A stretch of 64,000 nt of DNA, from assembly GCA_004431415.1 (NCBI GenBank), contig QPMI01000527.1, forward strand, positions 124,001 to 188,000. The letters are read 5' to 3'. Positions 5,627 to 63,755 of this stretch are shown here, piece after piece; positions within the stretch are counted from its first letter, which is position 1, and each line of letters opens with the position of its first letter. The DNA comes from Cyanophora paradoxa CCMP329. Taxonomy: Eukaryota > Plantae > Glaucophyta. The notes beneath the pieces were generated by a model. That model did no database searches. It was given only the letters and a program-made list of their open reading frames with translations, and was not told the DNA's origin. Made by a program: the position numbers and the translations under genes.

Positions 5627-6006
5627 GCCTGACTAGCTCTCGCCCCTATAGCTAGCTGCGGCTTTTTTAGTATGCCTGTACATGTGTAAATGTGAGCGCG
5701 GCTCAGCGTCGGGGTACAGAGCGACCGAATTCGGGTACTAGCGCGGTCGATCGCGAGCGGGGTACAGAAAGGTAGACATCGATGTCAACAACCTGTACCC
5801 CCCTGCGCGCGGCACACGACGTCGACGCAGCCGCGCGCGGCGCCGGCGAAATGCTGGCGCGCGCCGTGGCCATGCACGGACGAATTCGAAGCTTGAGACA
5901 CCGCGAGGGATACAGAGCGACAGGTGGTGGGTATGGCATTTAAATTTAAATTTCGATTTCGAACTACGTATACGTATTCAACGATCAATTTGCAATGCTG
6001 GATCAA

Positions 6007-6364
6007 TTTTGTCCTCCGCTTCTTAGTGATGTATACGTAATTCCTCTAGCTTCGATATTGATGGTATCTCTAGCTCTGGCTCTTCTTCGTGTCAGTCATC
6101 CTCTGTCCCTATATAGCTAGATCTGCTCGATTTATCGTCTCTTCAAATTCTCGATATCGATCTGTCTCGAGCTCTGTGTCTTTTCTTTTTTATTGTCGAT
6201 TAATATTTTGGCTCTTTGTCTTATCTTTCTTTGTGCTCTTGTCTTAGTTATTTTGCTTTTTTGTCTTTATAATTATGCCCCCTGGGCAGCCCCCGCAGTG
6301 CTGGTGACAGCCTGGTGTCTAGACTCTAGAGACGTCGACTGTGGCCGGTAATTCACCAAAAAAA
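6007..6364 (+). mobile_element. LINE family A 3' fragment with poly(A) and 13-bp TSD
   Basis: Matches the reverse complement of 13389-13690 and ends GGCCGGTAATTCACC(A)n. TSD AATGCTGGATCAA at 5994-6006 and 6365-6377. Confidence 0.9.
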
Positions 6365-6529
6365 AATGCTGGATCAAATTGTAAGCATCACCTGTACCCC
6401 CTCGAGGCAGCTTGCACTTGCGGTGGACTGCCTCGTTCGGGTGCGGGCGAAGCTTGAAGTACGTGAGCGCTAGCTAGCAAGCAGAATTCGTACGCTCGCC
6501 TAGGCCGTTTCGACGTCGACTCGGCGAGG

Positions 6530-9500
6530 ATGTCCGGGATAGGCCGCGGGCGCGGCCGGTCGGCGCGTCCTGGTGCGTCGCGCGCGCTCCGATTCTCGCC
6601 CTCGAAGTCCCGCGCGTCGCTGACCGCGACCGGCTCTCCAGCTGGATGCATATGGCTCCCGAGTGAAATGGATGCGACGTCAGTTGCAACGCCGACGTCA
6701 ACCGCCTCGGCAGTTACCTTTGTCCCGTATGGAAGCGGTGCGTAGACCTCACTATTAGGCTAGGACGCTCCCAGCTGCCGGACGCTGTCGCGCTCATGCA
6801 TCCGCAGGCTCTGCCTCGCCGATGGCCGCCGCCGTGGCCAGCGACGACCGCGTGCCGCTTCTCGCCGCAGCGCAGAGCACTTCGCCATCCAGCGCTGAGC
6901 TGGCGCCGGCCTCGGCGCCCGAACGGAAGGCCGCCTCTAGCACAGCGCCCGCGTCCGCCGCGGCTTCACTTGGAGCTGGAGCGGCTGGCGAGGCAGCCGG
7001 GGCCGGAGCCGCCGGAGTCGGCCATCTGCAGCCGGCTGGCTCTGCTAGCGCGGCGTCGCCCGGGGTCGAGCAGTGGTTCCATGCGGCTACTACGGGGGAC
7101 GTCAACGTGCTTCGGTGCCGCCCCCCGCCCCCCCCCCCTTCTCGTACCCCCCTGCCACGCCTGCGAGGGGCCCAGATCTAAATCCCCCGTCTTCCATCCA
7201 CCGCGCTATTTCCTTTCTCCCTCCGCGCTCCACCGCCCCCCCCCCCCCCCCCCTTCCCTCCGCTCCCCCCCCTCCGCCCCCACACACACACATCCTACCC
7301 CTTCCCTCTCCCACTCCCACCATCCCCAACCCCCACCCCACCCCAGTTTACCCCCACCTTCCACTCCACCCCCCTCCCTCCCTCCCCCTTCCGCCCCCCC
7401 CCCCCCCCCCCCCCCCGCCGCCCCCGCCGCCCTCGTACATTGGATCGAATGGCCTCGCAGGGCGATGCTGGAAGGAGGCCAGCCGGTCGATTCAACGAAC
7501 AAGGAAGGCCTCACCGCGCTCTACATCGCATGCGAGAACGGCCACGAGGCCGCAGCGCGGCTCCTCCTCGAGCGTGGCGCAGACTCGATGCTGCCTTGCG
7601 GCGATAGGGGCAGGCTCCCGATTCACGCCGGAGCCGCTGGCGAGCACGAGCCCATCGTGAGGTGCCCTGCAGGAATCCTGCATCATCCTTGTCAAGTGCA
7701 AACTGCCCTGCAGGCTTCTGCTGGGGCGCGGGATGCCTGTGGATGCGAAGACCAAACGAGGGGCTACGGTACTCTACATTGCATGCCAGGAAGGTCGGGA
7801 GGCTGTGGCGCGGCTCCTGCTCGAGCGCGGGGCGGACCCCGCGCTGTGTGATGAAAGAGGCTGGCACCCCCTCCACGCCGCTGCAGACTCCGGGCGCACG
7901 GCCATTGTCAAGTGCGGCGGGCCCCGTTCTGCTTTCCGCTGTCGGACTGCATGTGATCAGGTGCCGGCTGCAGGCTTCTGCTGGAGAGGGGGGCGCCGGT
8001 GGATGCGAAGAACAACTATGCTGTCACCGCTCTGTATTTAGCAGCTCAGAACAGTGACGTGGACGTCACACGGCTCCTGCTCGAGCACGGGGCGGACCCC
8101 GCGCTGTGTGACGAAAGAGGCTGGCACCCCCTCCACGCCGCTGCAGGGAACGGACATGGGGCCATTGTCAAGTGCGGCGGGCCAGGCTTTCTGCTGTCAG
8201 TCCGCGCGTGATCTCATTCCTCGGTCGCAGGCTTCTGCTGGAGCGCGGGGCGCCAGTGGATGCGAAGACCAACAGTGGGCGCACGGCGCTCCACATGGCA
8301 TGCACGCTGGGCCATGTGGACGTCGCACGGCTCCTGCTCGAGCACGGGGCAGACCCGTCGCTGCCCGACGAAGATGGCCAGCACCCCCTCCACGCCGCTG
8401 CAGGGAACGGACATGGGGCCATTGTCAAGTGCGGCGGGCCGTGCTTTTTGCTTTCAGTCCACACTTGCTCTCATTCCCCGACCGCAGGATTCTGCTGGAG
8501 CGCGGGGCGCCTGTGGATTCAAAAGACAAAGAAGGTGGCACTGCGCTTTTCATGGCAAGCGTAATGGGCGATGAGGACATCGCACGAATCCTGCTCGAAC
8601 ATGGAGCGGACACCATGCTCTCATGTGACGCTGAAAGTGACCCTGAAAATTGCGATCTGCTGCCCATTCATGCAGCATCCTTGGCCACGAAGAACATATC
8701 TCTCGTGAAGTTTGTACCAGATTTAAACCTGCATCCACCCAGCAATTATCTTAATGAGCCCTCTGCAGGCTTCTCCTCGAACGTGGAAACCCTGCAGCTG
8801 TAACGGCTGCCTGCACTCTCAACTCGAGAAAAGGGACGACGTTATTGCACATTGCCGCCTGTCAAGGATATGTTGATATCATTCGGTAAATGGCTGCGGC
8901 AGCCCATCGGGTGTCTGGCCACGGCAGCCTTGATGACTCAGTGATCTGGGGGTGGTGTGCATGCAGATTGTGTCTGGAGCACGGGGCAGTGCTGGAAGCG
9001 GAAAATGATCGCGGCTGGACACCGCTAATGGACGCCATCTGGGCGGGGGAGGCGCCAGTGGCACGCTCTCTTCTGGAGGCGGGCGCTGCGTGGGACACGG
9101 AGGACAAGGAGGGAGTGACAGCTCTAGAGCTCGCCCTCCGTTGGCGGCAAGGCGCCTTCCTCAACCCCTTCCTCGACTGTCCGCGCGTCTTGTTCACCGC
9201 AGCCAAGCTTGCATCTATTTGCGAGCAAATCATTGCCGCTGTCGGAGCTGAGTGTAATCCTGCCGCTGTCGTTGCCAAGTTTCCCTCGCACAAGCTCCAC
9301 TGTGCCCTCCACCTCGCCCGGCTTCTCGAGGTCCGGCGACCCCCGGGCTCGTCCCATTCATGCTTTTATTTCTTTTTATACATCACGCGCGTACGTATCG
9401 CAGAGAGCGGCCAAGGCAAACCCCGACCAGGCTTCTGTCATCCTTGAACACCGCGATGAAGCCATCAACGTCGCTTACCAGGTGACTTGCTTGTTCATTT

Positions 9501-12726: not shown

Positions 12727-14079
12727 GACCCTGCTTCACGATCACGACGGCTGGCCGCCGGGCAGCTCGGCCTCCTCGATAGTGCACGCACAGCGCAGCC
12801 AGCACTGCTCGCATCCAGCAGATCTAGGACACCTAGGCCTGACGAGACAGCGTGTTTTGATTCCCGTCTAGCAGTTTTCGCATCTAATGATCGTCCCGAT
12901 TTGGTTAGTCGTTCATCTAATTCACGGTTGCCATCATCTCTAGGTTTGCACGTTTATATAATTAGATTCATGACCGTCGGACAGCGCAGCGAGCTGTGTT
13001 TCGATCCACGGCCAACTGTCACGTAAACGTAGTATTGCGGTTTATAAAATCGAACCTCTGACTCGCATCCAGTTATCAATTTTATATATGCATGTAGGTG
13101 TTGCATCATCAACTGGCTGCATGATCAAATTAAAAGAACCTCTAGATCTGACTCGACATGTAGGCTCATGATCATCTCTCGTCATCATGCATGTAGGTGC
13201 TGAAAGTACCGATTTTGTGCTTTTTCTTGAACGCGAAGTAGATGCAATAGATGCACGAGTGCTGTGCATCTTGGTGTGTGCTCGCCGAGTCGGAAGGCCC
13301 TGAGGTGTAGGCAGTGATCGATATCTGGAACTTCGGGATCTTGGGAATGCATTGCAATTAATATTAATATTGATATTGCAATTGCGCATTTTTTTTTTGG
13401 TGAATTACCGGCCACAGTCTCTAGACACCAGCACTGCGGGGGCTGCCCAGGGGGCCTAAAGACAAAAAAGCAAAATAACTAAGACAAGAGCACGAAGAAA
13501 GATAAGACAAAGAGCCAAAATCGACAATAAAAAAGAAAAGACACAGAGCTCGAGACAGATCGAGAAGAGACGAGAAATCGAGCAGATCTAGGGACAGAGG
13601 ATGACTGACACGAAGAAGAGCCAGAGCTAGAGATACCATCAATTGCAATATCGGAAGGAATTACATCACTAAGAAGCGGAGGACAAATTTGAGAAAGATA
13701 AATAACAGGAAGCAGACAAGTAAGAGGAACAACAAGACGACGCGGAGGCGGAGGCGAAGCAGGACGACGCGAAAGGGCAGAGCTACGGCACAAGGTCGAG
13801 GAGGACACAGGAGGCGGAGCAGGCGGATCAAGAGCAGGCAAAAGGACAGTCAAAGGAATCACTAAAGCCGACCGGGGTCGAGACGGGCAGTCGAACTGCA
13901 AACGACGGCGAACAACAGGTCGAGCACGAGGACTATAGCTAGTATTGAAACTAACTCTAGCATCAACACTACGATCAGAATCCGAACTAGACCGAACTAA
14001 ACTATAAGGCGAAGTACGCCGGCGCCGGCGGGATACGACCAGCGAAGCAGAAGACGAAGGCAAAGGCGGCGGTCCGGTA

Positions 14080-17000: not shown

Positions 17001-19824
17001 TGCTCAAGAGGTACTCCTTCCAAGGAGCCGAGCAGGACGGGTCGGCCAACAAGGCCACCCACTTCATTTTTAGCGACAGAGAAAAAGCACGAATATCAGG
17101 GCAGTTAAGACCACCTTGACGCCACGGCAGAGGAGAAATATACTTCGAAAGTTGCCCGCTCACGCCGGCGAAAGAACGAAGCTTGTCTTGCCACGCAGAA
17201 TACTGGGCATCAGGGGGGTCAAGCAAATACAGAGCATAATGAAGGGATCCAATAAAGACTGTCCATGCAAGAAGCACGCCGGAGCGCATCGGCATGTGAT
17301 AGGTTTTCGCTTGCTGCACACGGATATCAAGAGCAGCATTTTTCTTACGCCAGAAGCGAGACAGATCGGGCTCAAGCGGAAAGCCCAGGTACTTGCGGAT
17401 TTTCTCAGCGGGAGGGAGATCCGTCACCTGGAGGCGCCGCCAGGGACAGTCCTCGACGCTAGGCCACGCGTCCGCAGGAATATCGCGGAGCGGAAGAAGG
17501 TTAGATTTGTCGAGATTAATAAGGGCGCCAGACAGCCGGCAATATTTATCAAAGCACTCTTTCCAAAAGGGTAGCTCGGCAAAAGAAGAGATTAAAGGAA
17601 CAGTATCGTCCGCGAACTGGAGTACCTTACATAGGGAGTTAGGAGAAAGGCGGACACCACGTATACGCACGTCAGCATTAATCAAAAGGGCTAAAAGGTG
17701 CGTGCACAAATTATACAAATAGGGAGATAGCTATAGGGGGCCACCCTGACGCACTCCGCATCGAATGGGGAAAGGGGCCGAGGTCCAGCCGTTAATGTGA
17801 ACAGAACCCTGCAGATCAGAGTAAAGTAAGCGAACCCACTTGATAAACTGAGATCCGAAGCCGAACTGTTCAAGCGACCAAAAAAGGAAGCTCCAGTTAA
17901 CGCGGTCATAAGCTTTTGAAAAATCGAGAAATCCGAAGCAAAGTTGTTCAAGCTCAGGATTACCGCCCTCGTAATGCATTAATAGATAAACGAGCATGAC
18001 CTGGTGCACTGCGGAGCGACGATGAATAAAGCCGGATTGAAAGCGGGATACAAGGCCAGGCATGAGTGGTGTTAAACGGTTGGAAAGGGCGCGTTCAACT
18101 GCACGCTCCTCAACATTAGATAGAGAGATTGGGCGGCGATTCGCAATCAAAGTAGGGTCCGTTGACGGCTTCGTTATAGGAGTAATAAGGACGTGCCGCA
18201 AGGACTCAGAAGCCTGACCGGACTCATACATAGCACTGAGATAAGCACAGAAGTCGGGGCCAATCTCATCAAAAAAGCGAACGTAAAATTCAGCAGGGAG
18301 GCCATCGACGCCAGGAGACTTGGCGCCGCCAGACATCTCCTTAAAAGCGCGAAGCAGCTCTCCAGGCGATAGGTCAGAGTCAAGATCCGCAGACTCAGTA
18401 GGGAGCAGGCGGTGGGGGGAATAGAGAGGGGCAACGCCAGTCCGCTCAGCCAGCGACTGATCAACCGCGGCCTGAGCTGCGGCACCGTCATATAGATGAG
18501 CGTAATAGGCAGAAGAAATCTCAAGCAAAGTACAGGGGTCGTCCGACGCGGCCTCCGGGCCTTCGGAGTCCGGGGCCCGAAGCCCTTCGGTAAACCGTGC
18601 ATGCGAATCCGGCAAATAGTGTTCAAAAAAGGCTTTACTAGATCGACCATCTTGCGCCGCGGCGAAACGAATTTCGTTGCGCGAATGTTGTCTGGCATAG
18701 TCAGACACAAGCGAATTTAACGTACGCATCATGGAGGTGCGCAGTGAGCGGAAAGCGATATCGTTAATAGAACCAGCGGCGTGGCGACGGATGAGAGCTT
18801 CGAGAGCTCGAACAGAAGAGACGTAGGCGTCCTTCTGCCTGCGCTTCTCATCAAGCTCCCAGGCCCGTACGCGACGCTGGAGCTCTGATTTGAGGGCGTC
18901 CCATCGGCGGACGCGATCAGTAACCAAGGGCCACTCAGCACGCCAGTCACGAATTACAGCAGAAATGAGATCAGCATACTCAGGCCGTTTGCCATACGCC
19001 GCCCAGTTCATGCGCCAGCGACCGGGGCCGCGGCGCGAAATCCCTGGAGCTTTAAGCGTGAGAAAAATGCCAATATGATCAGAATTGCGCGGCTCGCCGA
19101 CAGCAGAATAAGCCGTCCACGGACGTAGCGAGACGGCCCAATCGCGGAGGGAGGACGAGAGGAAAAAATAATCGAGACGGGACTCAATCGATCCCCCATC
19201 CGGCCGCGGCCGGCTCCAAGTTTTAAAACAAGCTCTAGCGCGAGGCCCGGCGTCAAAAAGGCCATAACGAGCCCGGATCAACTCGAAGGCATCAGGGGGA
19301 AGGGTTCCGCGACTAGGGCCAGGAGCATCGGAGGGCAGCTCGTGGAAATTTAAATCTCCTCCTAAAATGAGACGGCCATCGAAGGGAACCACGGATTCAA
19401 GAGTATATAGAAGAGTGTCATAGAAGCCGCGACGCTCGGAATCATCAGTAGGAGCATATACATTGCACAAATAAATGGGACCGAATTTGGTCTCGAATAA
19501 GAAAAGCTGCAGTCGAGGACTATCAACCGGAGTCAACAGTCGAATCGAAAAAGGGGAATCGCCAGGAAAGAGAGTGGCGACCCCCTGAGTAGCTTGACCG
19601 CTAGGGTTATGAGACCAAAACGAAGGGGTCGATCCCCAAGCACGCGCAAGGCGTTTAGATAGAGAAGGAGAAGAAACATGAGTCTCCTGCAAGCACACAA
19701 CCGAATGCCTCGCGCTGTCGCGGAGGCAATCAAAAAGAAAAGAGCGATAAGATTTACCTAACACATCATTAAAAGCTCGATCTAATTTGCCTGCTACGTT
19801 GAGAGAAAGAAATCTAAACGTCAT
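14080..19824 (-). pseudogene. LINE A ORF2: AP-endonuclease, reverse transcriptase, CCHC zinc finger and long Pro/Ser tail; interrupted by an in-frame TAG at 17731-17733
   Basis: APE motifs SLNVAG, CLQETH, NVYAP, GGDLN, SRLDYFF, SDH. RT motifs KSPGVDG, RPISL, DFSKAYDRV, GVRQGGPL*LSPY, QFADD, KYLG. Finger CRVC..HVFSECP. The tail continues in shifted frames to ~13479. Confidence 0.92.
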
Positions 19825-25472: not shown

Positions 25473-26572
25473 TCGACGCGCACGCCGGCGGCCGCTCGGC
25501 GCGATTCCCGCGGGGCCCGAGCCCCGGCCCGACCCCGTCCGCCCGCCGCCTCCGCCCCCGCCTCCGCCATGGCCCTCGGCATGGGCGCCATCAACAGCCG
25601 TCCGCCCCCGCCCGCCCCGCCCCCTCCCCGCCCCCTCCCCGCCGGCGGCGCCCCCGGCGCCCTCGGCGGCGGCCGCCGCCTCGACCGTGGCGATGCTGGT
25701 GCGGGCGCTGCAGGCGGTCGGCCGCATGATCGACCGCATGGTCGCCACGACGGGCAAGGGCTCCTCGGTCCTGCGGCCCCGCGCCCTCCTCGTCAAGGGC
25801 CAGCTGGCCTGGGCCGCCGGCGACGCGCGCGCCGCGGCGCTGCACTGGACGGACGCGGCGGAGCTCGCCTCGCGGCTGCTGATGCCCGAGGACCTCGCTC
25901 TCGCCTACTTCCACCTGGCGCGGCGGGCGGGGACCTCGGACGGGCCCCGGACCGCCATCCGCGCCGACCGCGCCCGGCGGCTCTTCGCAGCCACAGGCAA
26001 CTCCTGGTGCGCTTGAGTTTGACGTGGAAAGTGTGAGAAGGAGCCCGCGAGCCGCTGACCTCGCCCGCGCGCAGGCTCTTCGGTCGGGCGATGGCGGAGA
26101 TCCACGTGGTGACGCCCTCTGCGGCCCGCGCGGCCGCCCAGGCCCGCGAGGCGCGGCAGGCGGCAGCGGCCGCCGCTGCCGCCGCTGCCGCCTCCGCCCC
26201 GCCGCGTCGTCGTCGGCGGCGTCGGCGAGCCCGCAGCGGCAGCCGCGGGCCTCGGCCAACATGTCGCCCCCTCCCCATCCGGCGGCGGCCGCCGCTTCGT
26301 CCTCCTCGCCGCCGCCGGCCCCGCAGGCGCCGGCCTCGCCGGCGGGCAGCGGCAGCAGCTCCGTGGCGACCTCTGCCGCACGCAGCCGGGCCGCCTGGGG
26401 CTCGCCGGCCCCGGGCCCCAACCCGGCCCCGGCCTCCCTGGACCCCGGGCCCCCGCCCGCCCTCTCCGCCCCCGTCTCCCAGTCCGGCTCCGCCCTCTCC
26501 GACGGCTCCGCCCAGGGGCCCCCGCCCCCGCCCGAGCCGGCCCCGGCGCCCCCCGTCCAGATGCGCCCCTAG
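25473..26572 (+). pseudogene. ADCY10-like/TPR gene 3' fragment (copy 2: part of the penultimate exon and the last exon, with an internal deletion)
   Basis: Near-identical to 4124-4169 joined to 4575-5626. Ends VQMRP*. Confidence 0.85.
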
Positions 26573-36600: not shown

Positions 36601-36612
36601 TATTAAGGTACT

Positions 36613-36992: not shown

Positions 36993-37025
36993 TTTTACGT
37001 TACCTGCAGCCTGCCAGGCTGCAGG

Positions 37026-37715: not shown

Positions 37716-37874
37716 GCTGCAGGCTGCAGCCTGCAGCTGCGGTCAAAAGTTCGCTGCAACGTTCACAGCTCGTTTTTTTTGTATTTCGACCAAACATGGC
37801 GAATATACGGTTAAAATTCGAATTCCCCGCGGGAGGCCACAACTTTACGAATTCCCCGAAGTTAAAATACGGTT

Positions 37875-42755: not shown

Positions 42756-43078
42756 CGGGTATTTGGAATTCCCCTGCTAAGGCTAGTGCAATCTACTAGC
42801 CTACAAGATGTAGCTTGAAGCACTAGCCGGCTAGCTTCGGGTGAAAAGTTATCGCGATCGCCGGCTACCCTTGCCCATACAACGGGCATGTCGAGTCGAT
42901 TAGGAAAAAAAACGAGCTGTGGTTAACTTGCCGCTGCAAGCCTGCAATTGCAAGTTTGCCAAGTTTGCAACTTGCCAAGTTGAAGCCGGTCAAAAGTTCG
43001 CTGCAAGCCGGTCGACCGGCGACGTCAAAAGTTCGGTGCAAGCCGTTATATAATTAAGGTTTGCTGCAAGAAGCTGAA

Positions 43079-43178
43079 TTTGCTTTTTTGTCTTTATGCC
43101 CCCTGGGCAGCCTAGCCGGGGCTAGCCCCTGCAGTGCTGGTGTCTAGAGACTGTGGCCGGTAATTCACCAAAAAAAAA
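43079..43178 (+). mobile_element. Short LINE A 3' end
   Basis: TTTGCTTTTTTGTCTTTATGCCCCC...GGCCGGTAATTCACC(A)9, with a palindromic insertion at ~43113. Confidence 0.85.
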
Positions 43179-43725
43179 GAATTGACTCCGAATTCGAAGT
43201 TGACAGGCTAGCGCTCTAGCCTCTAGATCTTGAGCTTGAGGCTTGAGCTAGAGCTCAACGAGCTTGATGATCTTGAATGAGCTTGACGTCGAGTTGACGT
43301 CGACGAGCTGTGTGAGCTGTATACATATGCATGTGGCTCGATCATGAAAAACATTGCATCATGATAATCATGAATCATGATCATGATCTGATGACCTGCA
43401 GCTGTACCCCCTGGCTCAAGGCTGCAGCCTGCAGGCTGCACAGCCTGCACTGCGGCAGGCTGCAGCCAGGCTGCAGCCGGGACGACGGTCTAGAATCTCT
43501 ACTAGGGCTAGATCCTGAGATCTGCCGCAGTGCGGCCATCTAGAATCTAGATCTGCCGGGCGTACGCCGCGGTACGCGTGCGGTCGCAGATCTACCTAGA
43601 CGAAGCTCGAAGCAGTCGACGTCAGCATTCTGAAGCTCGAAGCACGTGCAGCCAGCACTCCCCGTTTCCGCGTCGTCAGCAGCAGCAGCAGCCAGGCAGC
43701 AGCAGACGTCGTTTCACCGTCGAGG

Positions 43726-46700
43726 ATGTCCGGGATAGGCCGCGGGCGCGGCCGCTCGGCGCGTCCTGGTGCGTCGCTCGCGCTCCGATTCTCGCCCTAT
43801 AGCTAGCTATAGGCCTTGAATTCGCGTCGCTGACCGCGACCGGCGCTCCACTGGGCCAGCTGGCCATGGATGGCTTCCGAGTGCGATGGATGCGACCCCT
43901 GCGGCGGTTACCTTTGTCCCGTATGGGAGCGGTGCGCAGACCTTCAAGAATCCACTAGCTATAGGACGCTTCCAGCTGCCGCGCTCATGCATCCGCAGGC
44001 TCTGCCTCGTCGATGGCCGGCGCCATCGCCAGCGACGTCGACGACCGCGTCCCGCTTCTCGCCGCAGCGCAGAGCACTTCGACGATCAGCACTGAGCTAG
44101 CGCCGGCCTCGGCGCCCGAACGGGAGGTCGCCGCCAGCACAGACCCAGCGCCCGCAGCGCCGGCCGCGGCCTCGGCTGACTCGCATGGGACTGGCGCGGC
44201 TGGCGAGGCAGCTGGCCATGGGGCCGGAGCCGCCGGTGTCGGCCAGCTGCAGCCTGCCAGCGCTGCTAGCGCGGCGTCGCCCGGGGTCGAGCCGTGGTTC
44301 CATGTAGCTGCGACGGGGGACGTCGACGTGCTTCGGTGCGCCTTTCCCCCCCCCCCCTCTCCCCTCCCCCCCCCCCCCTCCCCCTCCCTCCACTCCCCTT
44401 CAATCCCTCCCCCATTCCCCACCCGCATCCGGCCGATCCCTCGCTTCCTTCACCCCCTTGGTACTTTTGATCGAAGGGACTCAACCCCCAATCCCCCGCC
44501 CCCCCTCTAAAACCGCCCCCCGCCCCTCCCCCCCCCCTCGCCCCCCCCCTCCCCTCCCCCTCGTACTTTGGATCGAAGGGCCGGCGCCTCGCAGGGCGAT
44601 GCTGGAAGGAGGCCGGCCGGTCGATTCAACGAACAAGGAAGGCCTCACTGCGCTCTACATCGCATGCAACAACGGCCACGAGGCCGCAGCGCGGCTCCTG
44701 CTCGAGCGCGGTGCAGACTCGATGCTGCCATGTGGCGAAATGGGCGGGCTCCCAATTCACGCGGGAGCTGCTGGCGGGCACGAGCCCATCGTGAGGTGCC
44801 CTTCAGGAATCCTGCATCATCTTTGCCAGCTGCAAACAGCCCTGCAGGCTTTTCCTGGGGCGCGGGGTGCCTGTGGATGTGAAGACCAAACGAGGGGCTA
44901 CGGTACTCTACATTGCATGCCAGGAAGGTCGCGAGGCCGTGGTGCGGCTCCTGCTCGAGCGCGGGGCGGACCCCTTGCTGTGCGACGACTACGGCTGGCG
45001 CCCCCTCCAAGTCGCTGTTGTTTACGAGCATATGGCGATTGTCAAGTGCGGCGGACCATGCTTTAATTTCCGCCATCAGACTTCACGTGACCCCATATGC
45101 ACGCCCGGTCCGCAGGCTCCTGCTCGAGCGCGGCGTGGATCCCAGTCTGGCAGACAGCAACAATCAGCTGCCCATTCATGCAGCTGCCGAATCCGGGAAC
45201 ATACCTCTCTTCAAGTTCGTTCTATTAAACCGCATTCACCTGTTTATACATATATACCACGTGCACCGTGATAATTATAGGCTCGCTGCAGGCTTTTTCT
45301 GGAACTCGGGAACCCCGTAACAGCAACCTGCACGCGCTTCGATATTAAAGGAACGACTGTGTTGCACGTTGGTGCCTTCCGTGGATTTGTGGATATCATC
45401 CGGCGCGTTACCAGATGAAGTTTTTCTATTTGCAAGTCTTTTGAGCCATCACCATCGCGTGATCTGAGCGCGGTGCAGATTGAGCTTGCAGCACGGGGCA
45501 GCGCTGGAAGCGATTGATGGACGCGGCTGGACACCGCTTATGGTTGCCTGCCAGTCGGGGGAGGCGGCGGCGGCGCGCTCTCTTCTGGAGGCGGGCGCTG
45601 AGTGGGACACGGAGGACAAAGAGGGAGTGACAGCACTAGAGCTCGCCCTCCGCTGGCGGCAAGGCGCCCTCCTCAATCCTTTCCTCGACTGTCCGCGCGT
45701 CCTCTTCACCTCGAGTAAACTTGCTGATATATGTGGGCGAATCGTTGATGCTGTTGCTGCTGAGTGCAATCCTGCCGCTGTCGTGGCCAAGTTTCCCGCG
45801 CACAAACTCCACTGTGCCCTTCATCTTGCCCGTCTTCTCGAGGTCCGTGATCCTCGGGCCGGGCCCGGCCGGCCCGTCCCATTCATTTTTTGACTTCGTT
45901 TCGAATTCTCCCGCCTGTCCCGGGGCCGTTCCGGGCAACGCAGAGGGCGGCCAAGGCAAACCCCGACCAGACTTCACTTATTCTTGAACACCGTGACGAA
46001 GCCATCGATGTTGCGTATCAGGTAGATTTCTCCCAGACCGTCATCTCGCCGACTCAGAGACACTTGTGCAGCTGCTGGATGCTATGGGGAGGAAATTTGG
46101 AGAGCGCCTGCAAAGGCGAGCAAGAAATGACGGTCTTGCGGTCACTTGGATAGGTGCCATGAGAAGGCTTGGGTGCGTCACATCGCCTCGCACGCTATAT
46201 ATATGTGCCTGTTTTGAATGGTTCTGATAACAAACCTGCGCAGGATGGAGACAGAAGACAAGAGGCTGGAGGAACGGCTACGGGATTGCGTCGAGCTCAC
46301 GGCAGATGACCCACTCGACACGTGGCACGCGAAGCAGGCGCGTTTAATTTGATATGATAATGAACACGTTGCAGTGCACCTGCAGCTGTACATGTGGTCT
46401 AACACCTTCTGCTCGCCCTCGATGCAGTTATACAAGAGATGTTACGAGCTCGAGCAAAACAATAAGAATAGCGCCATCGATGCAGGTATACTAGAGTTGT
46501 TTTGGACTGCTTGTGATCAGTTGGTGCCCATCGCCGACTCAGTCGAAGTGCGTGACACACCACCCTGCATCTGTCATGTCGTCGAGACCCCACTCAATGG
46601 CGCATGCAGGCTCTTGAACTTTGCCTGCCCGGTGTCGGGAGCCCACTCGACATAGCCATTGAACTGGATTTGTACCCGTTCTTTGTGCGCCTACCGACCC

Positions 46701-49520
46701 TCTTGCTCCTCACTCCTCGCATGCTGCTAGAAGCTTTGTTTTTATCCCAAACCTTTCGAAATGTTCCTACATCTGATCGCTAATGTTCCTACATCCTCGC
46801 CTGCGCAGGGCCATCCTTTTGTCCATCGCTACATTCAGCGCATCTCTGAGAGCGCATCAGATATGCAGGTCAGCACGAACGCCTTCTCTAGATCTCATCC
46901 AACCTAGCCATGGCCAGAGCACCTCATATGCATATGCATGTGTACATGCATGTACACATGCGCAGGCAATTGTATAAGAATTTTCTCACCCGTTTCAGGA
47001 CCTCACTTTTTTCATGTGCAGGCGGCTTCACTTCTTCCCAGCGCCCTCGTGTCGCTTGCTGAGAAGTTGTTGTTACGCGGTGCCGAAAAAGACGGCAAGA
47101 GCGAGGGAAAGGACGGCAAGAGCGAAGATGATGCTGGGACAGGTGAGGATGATGCTGGGGGAAATAAGCAGCCAATTGCAAGCGAGGGGACGTTCAATCA
47201 AACGAGCGAGGGAGAGCTCTGGTGGGAGTCTCCCGGGCACCCCCTCAACAGCTGGAAGGGAAAGTTCGCGGCGGATTTGACTACGTACCTTATTTTCCTA
47301 TTCCTCACGGCTCTCGGTACCGTCCTTTTACCCCCACTGCAATCCGCTTTGTGCAACGTCAGCTAACCACAGCCAGCTGTGTGGAGTGTGAACGCATACG
47401 TGCTTGGGGAGCTTGGCCACGGGCGACCGCAACCTTCAGTTCTGGCCCTCCTCGCCATTCAGTCTCTCTGTATGCTTCTGCACGAGTACTACCAGGCACG
47501 TCCGTAGGCCTTTTTGTCTGGCCTACCAAACTCTCGTTCTAATAAAGCGCGATGTTTCATCAGGCGCGGGTGGAAGGGTTCCGAGACTTCCTGGGAGACG
47601 TCTTCAATCTCTTTGACCTCGCCCTCTTTATCACCACGCCGCTCCTCGCGATTGTCGGAATCATTGCAGAGGTACTGATGGAGTTTCTCCCTTATCAACC
47701 GTGGTTTCAGCCGCTTTGACTTCAGTTCAGGCGGTACCCGGTTGTGCTCACTATGCCGACTATGTAGTTCCTGTCCTTTCTCTAAGTGCGACCTTACACC
47801 GACATTAATATTTACACAGCAGCTGTTCACTTGACTGACACCGCCGTGCAGTTTTCATTCCGGCTTCTCTTCGCCTTCTCGAGTTTGGGTACATCAGCTC
47901 CATGCTAGGTCTGCCATCATGCTAGGTTTTGGTTTTAAGCTCAAAACCAGCTCTCATCACTTCGAACAGGCCCCATGCTCGTTGTTTTCGGTCGCGTGCG
48001 TTTCTTAGCTTGTGGCTCCGAGGCTCTGCAACCCTCTCTTGATCTCTTGAACGCCAGATGGCGCAAAATGTTCTCTCGGTCCTCATCGTCTTTCTTCTCG
48101 TTTTCGCGTCCTTCGTGTTCGCCCTCTGGGGCTGGTCGGCCTCCATCCTTGGCCGCGCCAGCGACGGCGAACCGCCGATCACCTTGGCCGAAACTGCGTG
48201 CGCTCATGATCGGTCCTTAATATATAGCTACATATACCGCAGGCTCTCAGATCTTTCATGCGCTAAGCAACCCTTTCCTGCACCTCAGCGGATCTCTCTA
48301 CTTTGGTTTCCTGGGGGAGAGCGACTACGATCTGATGCGCTCCCGCGTCCCAATTGTTGGTCGGCTGTTTGCTGATTTTTGTCGGGCCGGGCCATGGGTT
48401 CAAATATGATCGATATCCCTCCACAGGCTCGGCATTTTTCTCGATCTACCAGATTATTACGGTGCGTCATGATCACTGACTCGAAGCACTATACACGTCA
48501 TGATCAACTGCAAGCCACTAACGTGTCGAGGCCATTGCCAGGTCATCCTGCTCCTGAACGTGCTCACCGGTCTCTTCAGGTGCGTGCGAAGAACCGCCTG
48601 CGCGCCCTGTTCATTTATTCACATTTATTCGTACTAACAATCCGGTCCGGATCCCAGCTTCTCTTTCACCGACATTTTTGAGAACGCGCGACACGTGTAT
48701 GCATTCGGCAGAGCGAAGGTGCCCCTGCTCCCTTTAATTTTGAAGCCCGCCGCCCTCAAAATCTTAAAAATTCAGATATCTGCAGCTTTTCGCCGCCGAA
48801 ATTGACCTGGCGGCAGATTATTCTCCGGTACCACCGGATGGGCCGCCATCTAGTGGCGCCGCTGAATGTAGTCTGGCTGCTGCTTAGCCCCGCGCCCCGC
48901 CTCGCCGCCGCGGTTATCAACGTGGTATCGGCTGTGTTCTTCCTCCCCTTCCTCGCCGTCGCACTCGGCCTCTCGTACCTGTCCCGCCTCGTCGAAAACC
49001 TCTTCGGAACTCCGGCGGACAAGAAGAAGCAGCAGGAGGCCGCCGCCCAGTCTGGAGCCCTGGAGGCATGGCTGAAGGCCATCGAAACCCACCGGAAGGC
49101 GCGGCTCGCGGACGCTGCCAAGGAGAAGACCGATGCTCCCTTAGAGCTGAAGCTCAAGTACCCCCTCGCGTACGACGAGGCCAACGAGAAGCCGGACCCT
49201 GTGCCCCCCGGCCCCCTCAAGGTGCGAGCCTCTACACCCCCGAACGATATGTATCTTCAGCTTTCTGAGTCAAATCGATCGAGCAGGTGGCGCACACGGC
49301 GGACAATATGCCGCGCAACCTGGAGACCATCCACGAGCGCACCGAGAAGCTGGAGGCAAGCCAGGCGGAGCTGAAGGAGAAACTGGAGGAGAAGATGGAC
49401 GCGTCGCTTGCAGAGCTGAAGGCCGGCCAGGCGAAGCTCGAGGCGTCGCTGGCGGAGGTGAAGGCGGCGCTCGCGGCGCTCGCCGCCCCCGCCGCCCGCC
49501 GCAGCCTCTTCGAGTTCTGA
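43726..49520 (+). CDS. Ankyrin-repeat TRP-like cation channel, copy C (apparently full length, short ankyrin array)
   Basis: Exon-by-exon paralog of copy A with three cassette exons. Same TM, pore, TRP-box and coiled-coil exons. Ends ARRSLFEF* at 49520. Confidence 0.85.
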
Positions 49521-50389
49521 GCAGCTGCTTCATGATCACGACGGCCGGCAGCACAGCCTCCTCGATAGCGCACGCACAGCGCAGCCAGCACTGCTCGCAT
49601 CCAGCAGATCTAGATAGAATAACTTATCCCCTAGGCCTGACGAGACAGCGTGTGTTTTGATTCCCGTCTAGCAGTTTTCGCATCCGATGATCGTCCATAT
49701 TGCTTAGTTGTTCATCCAATTCAGGGTTTCCAACAGCGATCGCGCGACTGGAATCGTTCTATCGTTCTATAGCTAGGTTTGCGCGTTTAGATTCATGATC
49801 ATGACAGCGCAGGCAGCAGTGTTTCGATCCACGGCCAGCTGTCACGTATAAGTAGTATTGCGGTTTATAAAATCGAACCTCTAGATCTGACTCCCATCCA
49901 GTTATCAATTTTATATGATCATCATCTCTCGTGATCTCGACATGAAGGCTCATGATCATCTCTCGTCATCATGCATGTAGGTGCTGAAAGTACCGATTTT
50001 GTGCTTTTTCTTGAACGCGAAGTAGATGCAATATACAGATGCACGAGTGCTGTGCATCTTGGTGTGTGCTCGCCGAGTCGGAAGGTGTAGTCAGCGATCG
50101 ATATCTGGAACTTCGGGATCTTGGGACTCCGGGAATGCATTGCAATTAATATTGATATTGCAATTGCGCATGCACATGAGCGTCGCGATCGGATATGGCC
50201 CTGCACCCGCGCGGCCTGCAGCTGCATGCACATGGCACGGGCCCATACACTGCATGTGATGCGTACGTATACGCATATGCGCTGCTATATCCCCGGCTCG
50301 AGCTCCAACTCGCGGCCATGATCATGATCATCATTTATTCAAATACAGCTCTGGCATGCTTACGTTAAATCTATAAGATAATCTATAGT

Positions 50390-56553: not shown

Positions 56554-56792
56554 CTAGCTCGCCGGGCCGGGCCTCGCCCCTAACGCTAGCTGCGCATGCT
56601 GCTTTTAGATTATGCCTGTACATGTGTATATGCGAGTAGGAGCGCCTTCAGCGTCGGGGTGCGAGCAGCCTCGAGCTCGAGCTCGGAGCAGCCTCCGAGC
56701 AGGCCCTAGCACGTAATTCCGGTCGACCTACAGGCTATAGCTCGTCGAGCAGGGTACCGGTCAAACGGCACATGGCAATATTAATTTTATAT

Positions 56793-57199
56793 GTTATTTT
56801 GCTTTTTTGTCTTTATGCCCCCTGGGCAGCCCCCGCAGTGCTGCCACTGTGCTGGTGTCTAGAGACTGTGGGCCTGTGGCCGGTAATTCACCAAAAAAAA
56901 TTAATTTTGTCCTCCGCTTCTTAGTGATGTAATTCCTTCCGATATTGATGGTATCTCTAGCTCTGGCTCTTCTTCGTGTCAGTCATCCTCTGTCCCTAGA
57001 TCTGCTCGATTTCTCGTCTCTTCTCGATCTGTCTCGAGCTCTGTGTCTTTCCTTTTTTATTGTCGATTTTGGCTCTTTGTCTTATCTTTCTTCGTGCTCT
57101 TGTCTTAGTTATTTTGCTTTTTTGTCTTTATGCCCCCTGGGCAGCCCCCCGCGCGCAGTGCTGGTGTCTAGAGACTGTGGCCGGTAATTCACCAAAAAA
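56793..57199 (+). mobile_element. Two tandem LINE A 3' fragments (56793-56900 and 56903-57199)
   Basis: Each ends GGCCGGTAATTCACC(A)n. The second starts at the same point as the 6007 fragment. Confidence 0.88.
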
Positions 57200-57506
57200 C
57201 AAAACTGCATCATGATCATCATCATGATCACCTGCAGCTGTACCCCCTCGCGGATCCAGCATCATCCAGGCTGCAGCTGCAGCCTGCAGCCTGCAGCCTG
57301 CGGAGCTCGAGCCAGCAGCCGCGCCAGTCTCGCCGGCGAGAGTCGCCGCCAGACTGCCAGAGGCTGCATCTGCAGTCTAGTCTAGATCTAGATCTGCAGC
57401 TGCCGGCGACTCGGTCTGCCGCGCGCGCTCTGTGAGCGAATTCGAATAGCCAGCAGCTGCAGCGCCACACGCTCGCCGACGCCGTTTCCTCGTCGACTCG
57501 GCGAGG

Positions 57507-60500
57507 ATGTCCGGGATAGGCCGCGGGCGCGGCCGGTCGGCGCGTCCTGGTGCGCCGCGCGCGCTCCGATTCTCGCCCTCGAAGTCCCGGCCCGCGCGTC
57601 GCTGACCGCGACCGGCTCTCCAGCTGCAGCTGGATGGCTTCCGAGTGCGATGGATGCGACCCCTGCGGCGGTAACCTTCGTCCCGTATGGGAGCGGTGCG
57701 CAGACCTACAAGGACCCACTAGGACGCTCCCAGCTGCAGCTGCCGGACGCTGGTCGGCGCCGGCCTCGCTCATGCATCCGCAGGTTCTGCCTCGCCGATG
57801 GCCGCCGCCGCGGCCGGCGACGTCGACGACCGCGTCCCGCTCCTCGCCGCGGCGCAGAGCACGTCGCCGTCCAGCGCTGAGCTGGCGCCGGCCTCGGCTC
57901 CCGAACGAAAAGCCGCCTCCAGCACAGCTCCAGCGCCCACAGCGCCGGCCGCGGCCGCGGCCGCTTCCCTTGGAGCTGGCACGGCTGGCGCGGCTGCAGC
58001 CGGAGCCGCCGGCGTCGGCCAGCTGCAGCCTGCCAGCGCTGCTAGCGCGGCGTCGCCCGGGGTCGAGCCATGGATCCATGCCGCTGCGACGGGGGACGTC
58101 AACGTGCTTCGGTGCGCTTCCTCCCCCTCCCCTCCATCCCCCCCGCCATACCCCCCCCTCCCCCTCATCGATATTGCCACATGTACAACCCCCCCCTCCC
58201 CCCCCCTCCTTCCCCCCTCCCCAATATTTTGGACGTCAACGACCTTAAGTGCGCCGCCCCCCCCTCCCCCCCTCCTCCCCCCCTCCCCCCTCCTCCACCC
58301 CCTCCCTACCCCCTCCCCTGCCGCCGCTCGCCCCCCCCTCCTCCTCCTCCCCCCCCCCACCCCCCCACCCCCACCCTTCCCACATTGCACTTTGGATCGA
58401 AGGGCCTCGCAGGGCGATGCTGCAGGGAGGCCGGCCGGTCGACGTCGATTCAAAGAACGAAGAAGGCCTCACCGCGCTCTACATCGCATGCGAGAACGGC
58501 CACGAGGCCGCAGCGCGGCTCCTGCTCGAGCGCGGCGCGGATTCGATGCGGCCTTGCGGCGAAAGGGGCAGGCTCCCAATTCACGCGGGAGCCGCTGGCG
58601 GGCACGAGCACATCGTGAGGTGCCCTGCAGGAATCCTGCATCATCCTTGCCAACCAAACACCCCTGCAGGCTTCTGCTAGGGCGCGGGATTCCTGTGGAT
58701 GTGAAGTCCAGACGAGGGGCTACGGTCTTTTACATTGCATGCCAGGAAGGCCGCGAGGCCATGGCGCGGCTCCTGCTCGAGCGCGGAGCGGATACCTCGC
58801 TGGTGGACGAAAAAGGCTGGCACCCCCTCCACATCGCTTCAAACAACGGGCACGGAGCAGTTGTCAGGTGCGGCGGGCCCGGCTTTGCTTTCCACCGTCG
58901 GACTGCATGCGATCTCGTGCGCCGGCTGCAGGCTGCTGCTGGAGCGGGGGGCGCCGGTAAATGCAAAGGACAAGAACAATTTCACACCACTCTTTTGTGC
59001 AGCCGAGATGGGTCACGTGGATGCCGTGCAGCTCCTGCTCGAGCGCGGAGCAGACCCTGCGCTCCCGTGCGGTCCCAACGGCTTCCACCCCCTCCACATT
59101 GCTTCAAACAACGGGCACGGAGCCGTTGTCAGGTGCGGCGGGCCCGGCCCTGCTTTCCACCGTCGGACTGCATGCGATCTCGTGCGCCGGCTGCAGGCTG
59201 CTGCTGGAGCGGGGGGCGCCGGTAAATGCAAAGGACAAGAACAATTTCACACCACTCTTTTGTGCAGCCGAGATGGGTCACGTGGACGCCGCGCGGCTCC
59301 TGCTCGAGCGCGGAGCAGACCCTGCGCTCCCGTGCGGCCCCAGCGGCTCGCAGCCCCATCATGTTGCTGCAATGAATGGACACGGAGCAGTTGTCAGGTG
59401 CGGCGGGCCCGGCCCTGCTTTCCACCGTCGGACTGCATGCGATCTCGTGCGCCGGCTGCAGACTGCTGCTGGAGCGCGGGGCGCCGGTGGATGCAAAGGA
59501 CAAGAGCGGTCTCACTGCGCTCTCTTTTGCAGCCCGCAACGGTCACGTGGACGTCGCGCGGCTCCTGCTCGAGCGCGGAGCGGATCCTGCGCTCCCGTGC
59601 GGTCCCAGCAGCTTGCAGCCCCTTCGCATTGCTGCAATGAATGGACACGGAGCTGTTGTCAGGTGTGGCGGGCCCGGCCCTGCTTTCCACCGTCGGACTG
59701 CATGCGATCTCGTGTGCCGGCTGCAGGCTGCTGCTGGAGTGCGGGGCGCCGGTGGATGCGAAGTGCGAGAGCGGTCTCACTGCGCTCTCTTATACAGCCC
59801 AGAACGGTCACGTGGACGTCGCGCGGCTCCTGCTCGAGCGCGGAGCAGACCCTGAGCTCCCGTGCGGTTCCAGGGGCATTCAAGCACTTCACATCGCTGC
59901 TGAGTTGGGGAACGGAGCCTTTGTCAAGTGCGGCAATCGAGAGCTCCGGGGGACTGTTTTTGCTTTCTGACTGCACGATTGTGTGCTCCGACCGCAGGCT
60001 TTTGCTGGATCATGGGTCACCGGTGAATGCAAAGACCAACACAGGTTCCACGGCACTCTCTTCTGCGTCCCGTTATGGTCATGAGGCCGTGGCACGGCTC
60101 CTGCTTGAGCGCGGCGCGGACCCCAGTCTGGACGACAACGAAAACAGGCTGCCCATTCATGCAGCTGTCGTATCCGGGAACATGCCTCTCTTCAAGTACG
60201 TATTATTGATAAGCCTCTGAGCCGTGGCCGCATCCATCCAGATACCTGACAAGCTCGCTGCAGACTCTTCCTCGAACTCGGGAACCCGTGACGGCAACCT
60301 GCGACAAAGGGAAAACGATATTGCACATTGCCGCCATATATGGTTGCGTTGATATAATCAGGTGCCCGATCATGATGATGACTGTGCATATGCTAGCGCT
60401 CTCACGTTTGCTTGAGCTGAATTGTTGGTGCAGATTAATATTGAGCCTGCAGCAAGGGGCAGAGCTGGAAGCGGTAGATGAACGTGGTTTCACACCGCTT

Positions 60501-62927
60501 ATGACGGCCTGCTGGTCGGGCAGGCGCAAGCGACGCGCTGTTTTCTGGAAGCGGGCGCTGCGTGGGACAAAGAGGACAAAGAGGGAGTGACAGCTCTAGA
60601 GCTCGCCCTGCGGTGGCGGCAAGGCGCCCTCCTCGACCCTTTCCTCGAGTGTCCGCGCGTCTTGTTCACCGCAGCCAAGCTTGCTACTATTTGCGGGCAA
60701 ATCGTAGACGCTGTCGCTGCTGAGTGTAATCCTGCCGCTGTCGTGGCCAAGTTTCCTGCCACAAGCTCCACTGTGCCCTCCACCTGGCCCGTCTTCTCGA
60801 GGTCAGGCGACCCCGATATGTTAGTCTCACTCTGCATGAACATAACATGCCGTGCAGAGAGCGGCCAAGGCAAACCCTGACCAGGCTTCTCTTATCCTTG
60901 AATGCCGCGACAGCGCCATTGATGTCACCTACCAGGTAACGTTCTTGCCTATCGCTAGCGCTATAGCGCTAGCGTTGATGCAACCGTCCATGCTAACCCT
61001 TCTAGATCTGTGATTTTGACGTTTGCCACGCAGCTGCTGGATGCTGTGGGAAGATTATTTCGAGAACGCGTGCAAAGGCGAGCAACGAGTCTTGAGGGCG
61101 ATTCCGTCACGTGGGTAGTCGCCATGGCAAGGATTGCGCACGGGTGCGTCACGTTTCCGCACACCCATGTACAAGCTCAAGCTTGCCTGGTTCGAGCAGT
61201 TCTGATAATACGAACGCACAGAGCGGAGACCGAAGCAAGTCTACGCGAATGTGTGAAGCTTACGGCAGACGATCCGCTCGACATATGGCATGCGAATCAG
61301 GTACGTTGCAATTGCGCCTCCCCTGTACCTGTATAGTACCTTCCGTGTTTAAACTTGCGTGTTCTCCAGTTGTACAAGCTCAAGAGTAAGAAGAGCGACT
61401 GCGATAGCGCTCTTTCCGCCGCATATGATCAACAGGGACCCATTGCCGACTCTGTTGAGGTGGGCGGTGCCCGCGCTTCTGCCTTCCGCCTGTTTTGTCG
61501 CCTATATGTGTGTGGGCATGCAGGCCCTAGAGCTTTGCCTGCCCGGTGTCGGCAGCCCTCTCGACATGGCTATTGAGCTGGATTTGTACCCGTTCTTTGT
61601 ACGCCCCATGTCCCACTTGCTCCTCGCTCCTCACATGCTGTCCCAAACCCCAAACTCCGCTGTATCCTCGCAGGGCCACCCGTTCGTCCATCGCTACATA
61701 CAGCGCGTCTCTGAGAGCGCATCAGATCTTCAGGTCAGCATGATCGCTTTATCTCATCCAATTTAGGACCTTATGCATATGCAGGCGGTTTCACTTCTTC
61801 CCAGCGCCCTCGTGTCCCTTGCTCAGAAGGTGCTGTCACGGGATGCCGAAAAAGAAGGCAAGAGCGAGGGAAAGGACGGCAAGAGTGAGAAGAGCGCTTG
61901 GGAAGACAAGCAAACGAGCGAGGGAGAGCTCTGGTGGGAGACCCCGGGACACCCCCTCAACAGCTGGAAGGGAAAGTTCGCTGCGGACTTGATTACCTAT
62001 TTTATATTCCTCTTCCTCATTGCCCTCGGTATTGTCCTTTTCTTCCTTCAGCCGTGTGTGTAGCTACAGCTAACCGCAGCCAGCTGTGTCGAGCGTGCTC
62101 GGGGAGCATGGGCGGCCCCGGCCTTCCGTTTTGGCCCTCCTCGCCATTCAGCCCCTTTGCATGCTTCTTCGGGAGTACTACCAGGTGCGTCTTTTTAAAC
62201 ATGCCTGCCTTCCTTTCTTTGAAACCAGTTTGCCTCAGGCGCGAGAGGAAGGCTTCCGGGAGTACTTTGGAGACATCTTCAATCTCCTCGACATCGCCCT
62301 CTTCGTTGCCACACCGCTACTCGCCATTCTTGGGATCATTGCAGAGGCAATACTCTAACTCTTCTCTTTTCTTAAATACATAACCGTATACGTGTGCGTG
62401 GTTCAAGCAGTGTTAACTTCAACATCCGTGCAGGCAATCCCGGCTTGCGCTCGCTACGCCGACAACGTAATTCCTGTTCTAGCCTAGGTGCGGCCCGAAG
62501 TACACAGCATTCGCATCAGTGGCGCGCAGATTGACTAGTACTGCCGATCAGTTTTTATACCGGCTTCTCTTCGCCTTCTCGAGTTTGGGTACATCAGCCC
62601 CATGCTAGGTTTGTCATCGACATCCCCATGGCCAGCATCTTTTCTGAGCTAAAACCTTCTCTGCTCACACCAAAACAGGCCCCATGCTCGTCGTTTTCGG
62701 TCGCGTGCGTTTCCCAGCTTGTGACTGCGATGCTCTGTAACCCTCAGCAATTAATAAATCTTATACTTTTTCACGTGCGAATGTCAGATGGCGCAAAATG
62801 TTCTCTCGGTCCTCATCGTCTTCCTTCTCGTTTTTGCATCCTTCGTGTTCGCCCTCTGGGGCTGGTCGGCTTCCGTCCTTGGCCGCGCCAGCGATGGCGA
62901 ACCGCCAATCACCTTGGCCGAAACTGC
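57507..62927 (+). pseudogene. Ankyrin-TRP gene copy D, seven cassette exons, truncated just before the pore-helix exon
   Basis: Paralog of A and C up to EPPITLAETA. Homology is lost at ~62955. Single-base losses in homopolymers at ~60520 and ~60760. Confidence 0.8.
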
Positions 62928-63086
62928 GTGAGTTCATGCTTAGTCTGGTCCTTTATGTGGCCGCCGCCGAGTCTGGAGCCTAAGCATGAACTCACGCAGT
63001 CGGCGGCCAGTCTGTGAGCACTCGGCCGGCGCCCGCCCCCTGTTGACAGCTCGAGCTCGCCGTCGTGACAATCGTTTTCCCTCAGA

Positions 63087-63755
63087 TCAACTGCACCTTC
63101 AGCCCGGCACAGACGGGCATCCCGCTCATGGCGCCCCTCGCGAATATATCCGTCGTCGTCCGCGGGATGCCAGGCTCTGCCGCCTGGATGCCCGACGCGC
63201 CCGCGATCGGAGATCTCTTCCTCATTTCGCACGTGGCGCCGATGATCACGACCGGCGGCTACATGCTCGCCGTGTACTCGACGGGGTTCAACGACACCGT
63301 CTTCGAGGACGCCGCGTCAACGGAGCTCTACGTTACGAACTCGGTGATCGGAGAGGCGTATCCAGACATCGGCCCCATGACGGGCGGCACGCGCGTGACT
63401 CTCACAGGGACGGCCCTGCCTCCGAACACTGGGGCGAAACTCGAGGCGCGCGTCTGCAACTCGCCTGCAGTCGTCTGGTCGCTGTGCGTTTCTCGCGTTG
63501 AGGCATATTAGGTTTGTGTATCAATCGCGCTCGTGCAGGACTGCAACGCGAGCCGTCATCGTCGCGCCCCCTGCGGTCAGCAGCAGAGCCTTGAATGAAA
63601 CAGGGATAGGGAATACGTATACAGGTAACGGAACTGCAGCAAACGCCACTTCGGCTGCTGGTCAACCGTCGAATTCCACCGCGAGATCAAGCAACCCGTC
63701 GACGCTCGCCCCCGTCGGTCTCGCGTACTGCGACATAGAGCTCTCCGTCGGGGCG
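63087..63755 (+). CDS. Exons of an IPT/TIG-domain, probably extracellular protein (partial)
   Basis: YPDIGPMTGGTRVTLTGTAL fits the IPT/TIG consensus. Several N-x-S/T sites. Intron-like breaks at ~63450-63538 and after ~63755. Confidence 0.6.

Follow-up and report, generated by a model that had tools for sequence, protein, structure and literature searches.

Composition of the window

The window, by which we mean the whole stretch of 64,000 nucleotides from Cyanophora paradoxa analysed in this study, is eukaryotic DNA with 63% G+C and is built of segmental duplications. It contains four ankyrin-gene paralogs and the spacers upstream of them; LINEs are represented by two families and by several truncated ends. 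The short palindromic insertions that are the subject of this study, referred to as scars, are concentrated in the spacers. An Rfam search gave no match. Protein searches for further DNA of this genome or its relatives returned only LINE proteins of 26-30% identity; a 190-aa ORF had no match, and no encoding contig was found. The segment 5400-7000 is present in twenty public runs (2012 and 2024), and contigs of four short-read runs, three from 2024 and one from 2012, were compared over 5300-7000.

Two classes of inverted-triplet insertion

The initial annotation had described 6-bp insertions by which a triplet X becomes X-rc(X)-X, where rc(X) is the reverse complement of X. All 15 of the 9-mers listed there were recovered at their positions, and counting against a Markov background in this window showed a clear excess of the form. 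A total of 311 X-rc(X)-X 9-mers with X of 3 bp were found, against 36-90 expected under global Markov models of order 1-5 and 51 under a local 2-kb order-2 model. When GC-only triplets were dropped, 214 were counted and 13.7 expected. Other word lengths gave no comparable count (617 vs 531 expected for length 2, 23 vs 6 for length 4, and 2 vs 1 for length 5). The negative control consisted of 96 unrelated metagenome loci (551 kb), in which 199 copies of the form were found with 158 expected, the surplus being TA microsatellites. These loci are chance matches obtained when metagenomes were scanned for the 17-bp terminal repeat described below, and L053, labelled as gut metagenome, was excluded from them; none of the 97 chance matches of that scan follows the element ends past 24 nt. 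Period-4 AGCT arrays are also present in the window (e.g. at 2232) and differ from the X-rc(X)-X form.

Clean indels between paralogs show two size maxima, at 6 bp with 39 records and at 8 bp with 14, and a single record at 7 bp. The inverted-triplet form dominates the 6-bp indels among the window paralogs: 25 of the 39 are perfect (null 2.8%) and 31 have at most one mismatch (null 13.5%), although a few records duplicate an event already counted, and the perfect ones correspond to about 22 distinct events. The 6-bp class is thus real as first described, but a companion class of 8 bp had been overlooked. It has the form X-C-rc(X)-G-X, which is perfect in nine of the 14 eight-base indels (null 0.24%), and its short allele is X alone. 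Two examples are as follows.

28580..28590: +8 scar CGT-C-ACG-G-CGT, clean paralog indel
34437..34447: +8 scar AAC-C-GTT-G-AAC, clean paralog indel

In the perfect indels of both sizes (25/39 and 9/14), the insert contains an inverted copy of the adjacent flank, which is the hallmark of P nucleotides. Indels of 12-21 bp could mostly not be resolved into scars, three of the nine twelve-base indels being resolvable (null 1.3%). One-sided +7 forms are rare, with one clean indel plus the insertion at 6321, suggesting either that the two ends act together or that the +6 and +8 scars derive from two elements.

The X-C-rc(X)-G-X form occurs 21 times in the window with 1.3 expected, a count that other letter pairs in the two spacer positions do not approach. 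The C is always on the 5' side and the G always on the 3' side, whichever strand is read. Matching C and G flanks were found in 4 of the 21 cases, which equals the level expected from flank bias, so the letters are not copied from the flank. A hAT geometry with a 5-bp TSD was rejected for this class, since under it every case should have C and G flanks. Both classes share a target bias, with C at -1 and G at +1 (43% vs 29%; p ~1e-7 and 0.04). The non-templated C and G suggest an element that makes a 3-bp TSD and has C...G ends, and we infer that the fixed letters are the first base of such an element, left at each hairpin tip.

Short-read support and polarity

The scars found within LINE copies are listed below.

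5995..6377, + strand: 5'-truncated LINE 3' end with poly(A) and a 12-bp TSD (5995-6006, 6366-6377); private scars at 6031, 6109 (+6 plus TA), 6142 (decayed at CpG), 6153, 6199, 6267, 6321 (+7, one C kept) and 6331
13640..13648: +6 scar found only in the long LINE copy, at its 3' end
17728..17736, - strand: +6 scar changing CTA to CTA-TAG-CTA, a stop in a conserved reverse-transcriptase motif of the long LINE
36342..36551: two +6 scars, at 36343 and 36543, by which a truncated LINE copy differs from the long one

The LINE copy at 6003-6365 carries eight scar-type insertions and 5 substitutions, and its 12-bp TSD is intact, while its sister copies have 0, 0 and 1 insertions. The insertions previously noted in this copy are real, but the earlier count of five or six was too low. 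Eight insertions in a copy with an intact TSD, next to so few in its sisters, denote a process that is fast and very local. Two further insertions in this LINE end, at 6046 and 6307, are unexplained.

Since the assembly of C. paradoxa was published as long-read based (PMC6704402) and two-way paralog pairs alone give no polarity, the longer alleles might be assembly artefacts, or the shorter ones deletions from a longer ancestral allele. However, short-read contigs carry the scarred alleles exactly, with neither difference nor gap: 5619-6032 and 6615-7000 in all four runs, 6339-6543 in at least three, and 6082-6183 in one run, where the scarred contig has single-copy depth. Far deeper contigs, which represent other copies in the genome, do not have the inserted letters at 6031, 6109, 6142, 6199 and 6267. 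The comparison of four copies of the LINE 3' end further revealed that only one copy has the longer alleles. At 17728 the scarred motif reads GGPL*LSP, whereas it is intact as GGPLSP in the second LINE of the window and as GCPLSP in four outside proteins; as five other proteins keep the motif that the scar disrupts, the polarity is established as insertion. The LINE copies, the deep contigs and the reverse-transcriptase motif all make the long allele the derived one. Artefact and deletion are refuted for the tested sites, and we give this explanation virtually no weight. The excess of the form, its presence in short reads and the derived state of the long allele, the three points on which the initial annotation had staked its claim, all held.

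Distribution of the scars

Scars are clustered in the following regions.

5590..6800: scar-dense spacer upstream of an ankyrin gene, ~16 per kb and ~11% of bases, including 5646, 6646 and a +8 scar at 6517
12751..13365: cluster of +8 scars (12753, 12972, 13282, 13295), together with +6 scars arrayed in register at 13357
26560..27500: scar-dense spacer and 5' end of the second ankyrin paralog, with 26712, 26811-26814, 27296 and double scars at 27382 and 27434
35000..35350: densest cluster, ~29 per kb; scars are arrayed in register at 35235
42925..44000: scar-dense spacer beside the candidate element and upstream of the third ankyrin paralog, with +8 scars at 42972, 43447, 43523 and 43848
49500..50350: scar-dense spacer, ~19 per kb, with +8 scars at 49682, 50070 and 50124
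56560..57830: scar-dense spacer and 5' end of the fourth ankyrin paralog, with 57232, 57621, 57731 and a +8 scar at 57494

In spacers upstream of genes the density is 13-29 scars per kb, whereas LINE bodies and ankyrin arrays have 0-1.7 per kb. Scars make up about 10-20% of the bases immediately upstream of ankyrin genes, and they are near-absent from intact LINEs. The deficit in coding arrays may be partly due to selection, and that in LINE bodies may reflect young or methylated DNA; repeats in C. paradoxa carry CpG methylation (PMC12344493). In-frame scars persist in the 5' ends of ankyrin paralogs, and the scar at 57818 adds two codons to the predicted first exon of the fourth one. A total of 12 in-register arrays of at least two events (15 and 18 bp) were found in the window, some of which are GC-only or TA runs.

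Micro inverted triplications could also arise by replication template switching or by fold-back of Okazaki flaps. Such events have the identical DUP/INV/DUP topology with no need for a transposon, and a few longer irregular inverted insertions, at 6307 and at a site to the right of 42924, are in their favour. Yet the unit here is fixed at 3, the C and G are non-templated, and gene-proximal spacers exceed LINE bodies in scar density by more than tenfold. The broad lengths, spacers and fully templated bases that define small inverted triplications were not found in the scars, and we consider this origin quite unlikely.

A candidate source element

One resident element has features that correspond to the scars.

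37758..42927: candidate source element of 5,158 bp (37764-42921), given with its flanks

It has perfect 17-bp terminal inverted repeats starting with CACAG and a 3-bp TSD, GTT (37761-37763, 42922-42924), so that the direct-repeat unit of the scars equals its TSD length. AAC flanks it on both sides; the empty site thus reads AAC-GTT-AAC, and the element sits on the middle triplet of a scar. Such a middle-triplet position is taken by chance at ~0.5% of window positions and at 1.4% of those in the neighbouring spacer. The CAC(T/A)(A/G) terminal repeats and 2-3-bp TSD of CMC/En-Spm (CACTA) elements are both found here; as for subterminal repeat arrays, only a few two-copy repeats of 9-12 bp lie near the left end. 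The interior is mostly a LINE-like insert, and the ORFs there encode reverse transcriptase or have no assignment. The long ORFs tested across the window are LINE, ankyrin or unassigned, and a transposase was not found. The element is therefore non-autonomous at best, and the CMC/En-Spm assignment of the culprit, made from the ends and TSD only, is putative. No site with all three states (empty, element and scar) was found among the window paralogs or in the contigs over 5300-7000.

Other elements lie nearby. A second, decayed CACTA-like element at 35334-36992 is split by a LINE and has subterminal repeats and a TSD of tta/ttt. A 307-bp inverted repeat (36627-36933) more probably represents the interior of a larger element of the CACTA-like type. 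The motif CTGTACCCC, considered as an element end, is a feature of the duplicated upstream regions. A hAT-like MITE at 37026-37715 with an 8-bp TSD sits within a period-7 CTGCAG array. The right part of this array is exactly the +14 product of hAT geometry under the same repair rule, which is suggestive, but +7 scars or slippage also parse the array.

Proposed mechanism

We regard it as probable that the scars are excision footprints of cut-and-paste transposons with a 3-bp TSD and C...G ends, most likely CACAG/CACTA-ended (CMC/EnSpm-like), formed via flank hairpins that are rejoined across the TSD. Insertion would first duplicate the triplet X, as seen for one element. The shape of the scars suggests that, on excision, the non-transferred strand is nicked by the transposase and both flanks are closed into hairpins. 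If the nick falls at the element border, an even palindrome would result, whereas a nick one base inside would keep the element's terminal C at the tip. A host nuclease would then open both hairpins at least 3 nt past the tip, leaving 3' tails that end with rc(X) and X. Pairing of these tails over 3 bp, followed by fill-in, would yield X-rc(X)-X (+6) or X-C-rc(X)-G-X (+8), and pairing in the alternative register would restore X invisibly. The product would thus be fixed by microhomology, not by precise opening. Opening exactly 3 nt off-centre, as first envisaged, appears unnecessary, because any opening of at least 3 nt would expose the same 3-bp microhomology. Repeated insertion and excision in gene-proximal DNA would produce stacked and nested scars, and re-insertion in register followed by excision would produce the 15- and 18-bp arrays; such arrays are present, as this predicts.

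The hairpin-footprint reading of the initial annotation gains support from the non-templated C and G and from the C...G-ended element with a 3-bp TSD that lies in a scar, but hAT geometry misfits. A hAT footprint was rejected for both classes: the +6 scars are even-centred, the flanks of the +8 scars match in 4/21, and a nick at the element end or one base inside it is needed. The link between element and scar is inferred from this correspondence. In support of excision, the unit is fixed at 3 and no comparable class exists at other lengths; the target bias common to both classes and the clustering upstream of genes also favour it. Several observations count against it, among them that neither a three-state site nor a transposase was found in the material covered above, and that plant CACTA footprints look different (see below). 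A single element was found in a single scar, and that element is still in place. Eight insertion-excision cycles per 300 bp within <2% divergence amount to a very high rate. The scarcity of +7 forms means that +6 and +8 are not independent end-by-end variation.

The very high local rate and uniform product would also be in line with an element-independent nick-and-hairpin mutator, that is, a host or domesticated enzyme making cuts with a 3-nt stagger in open chromatin, followed by filling, hairpin formation, opening and rejoining to give +6. Elements with a 3-bp TSD are few relative to the ~220 scars, and the window is without a transposase. However, such a mutator leaves the fixed C and G in the +8 scars without an origin, and these scars have the target bias of the +6 scars; a matching element sits in a scar; and extra unobserved steps would be required. 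We find it unlikely. Equally doubtful is the broader proposal that the +6 scars are written by a dedicated nick-hairpin-anneal process, for example by a domesticated CACTA-type transposase, aimed at gene-proximal DNA, which would be a programmed-looking mutator rivalling point mutation and adding codon pairs to gene 5' ends.

If excision footprints are the correct reading, excision scars would be a main source of mutation beside genes, accounting for about a tenth of gene-proximal spacer DNA. They would outnumber substitutions in one young repeat copy, place in-frame codon pairs in gene 5' ends and have put a stop into a LINE. The scar shapes predict that a CACTA-type transposase cuts with a flank hairpin and a nick at 0 or +1, and the uniform product suggests that end repair is dominated by microhomology annealing. 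Since scars are recognisable without the element, they would form a genome-wide record of past insertion sites, and the 6- and 8-bp indel class can be used for ordering the histories of paralogs and repeats.

Comparison with known systems

The initial annotation knew of no fixed footprint of such density, and none is described in the literature searched, within whose reach the older footprint papers (Volvox Jordan, Ascot-1, yeast hairpin repair) did not fall. The main text of the C. paradoxa genome paper mentions neither palindromes nor CACTA elements (PMC6704402).

Small inverted triplications and short template switches share the duplicate-invert-duplicate topology with the scars (PMC13334657, PMC5453318). 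The former are FEN1-linked, with a median of 148/160/148 bp, duplications from 7 bp to >10 kb, and spacers (PMC13334657). In contrast to the scars, these events are variable, much larger, spaced and replication-linked, and have no fixed unit or added bases.

Transib elements have a TSD of 5 bp and Muta1 one of 8-9 bp, both longer than the unit here. Flank hairpins opened by host nucleases are established for hAT, Transib, RAG and MULE (PMC5499845). For RAG, Transib and MULE, a hairpin that includes both full flank strands would give even palindromes as in the +6 scars. On the other hand, excision of Muta1 in yeast is >90% precise, and a fixed X-rc(X)-X product is undescribed for RAG, Transib and MULE (PMC5499845). 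TSD microhomology is known to guide the repair of excision sites (PMC4561436).

CACTA/En-Spm (CMC) elements resemble the present system in their CAC...GTG ends and 3-bp TSD. These agree with the element at 37764-42921 and with the fixed letters C and G in the +8 scars. Their published footprints in plants differ in being short and variable, of 3-5 bp (10.64898/2026.08.24.746626; PMC6379663). No report of such footprints making up a tenth of spacer DNA, or of hairpin chemistry for CACTA transposases, was found in the literature searched.

The footprints of Ac/Ds (hAT) are likewise palindromic, flank-copied insertions at vacated sites, explained by flank hairpins and microhomology joining (PMC5873905). 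Each palindrome has the complement of one flanking base at its centre, and the footprints are heterogeneous, with 28 types in 128 clones (PMC5873905). In contrast, the scars here are even-centred in the +6 class and carry presumed element-end bases in the +8 class, with a 3-bp unit instead of the 8-bp TSD of hAT and with one dominant product. The scars work like known hairpin footprints, yet they are not hAT footprints.

Insertions at the CACAG element and other transposons

Comparison with two sister repeats shows that the site of the CACAG element, a transposon with 17-bp terminal inverted repeats, holds at 42925-42945 an inverted insertion that is older and longer, centred on a C and with an arm of ~7 bp. 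This suggests that three events are nested at a single spot. Three further insertions were delimited:

35334-36992, remains of a decayed CACTA-like element, its two ends matching at 8/10, with subterminal repeats of ATTATGTCG in inverted orientation and TSD tta/ttt
35352-36600, 5'-truncated LINE with a 12-bp TSD, splitting the CACTA-like element
37026-37715 (region 37018-37737), hAT-like MITE, 23-bp terminal repeats starting CAGTGTTG, 8-bp TSD GCTGCAGG

The hAT-like MITE is surrounded by a period-7 CTGCAG array, and the +14 footprint of hAT geometry, the product predicted for an 8-bp TSD, fits its right flank exactly, which is suggestive. Arrays resembling it were found at 43420-43475 and 57267-57300. 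Self-complementary units of a form other than 3-bp make up the period-4 AGCT arrays at 2231-2263 and 31616 and the period-5 GATCT arrays (24634).

Other insertion forms

A recurrent +8 variant, X-TA-rc(X)-X with X ending in A (CTA, TTA), is present at 6109, 12954, 43046 and 12472, and is probably the +6 scar X-rc(X)-X with TA slippage. Insertions of 5 and 11 bp (6046 and 6307; 56830-56850) contain partial inverted copies and match neither the +6 nor the +8 scar class.

Ankyrin genes and upstream spacers

Scars are almost absent from the ankyrin genes, which consist of tandem units of ~260 bp, each apparently an exon plus an intron:

7710-8518, ankyrin gene
28328-30147, ankyrin gene
58815-59877, ankyrin gene

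The duplicated upstream spacers contain the motif CTGTACCCC in both orientations, with 10 exact copies (5711-5801, 6392, 26655-26810, 35096, 43402, 57238), and it possibly has a regulatory role.

LINEs

13390-19824, (-), long LINE, endonuclease and reverse transcriptase
37960-42755, LINE of a second family, lying within the CACAG element

No TSD of at least 7 bp was found for the second LINE, and its reading frame, running back, traverses the left end of the CACAG element. The frame of the long LINE is stopped by a single scar and is open apart from that; its nearest database relatives share only 26-30% identity.
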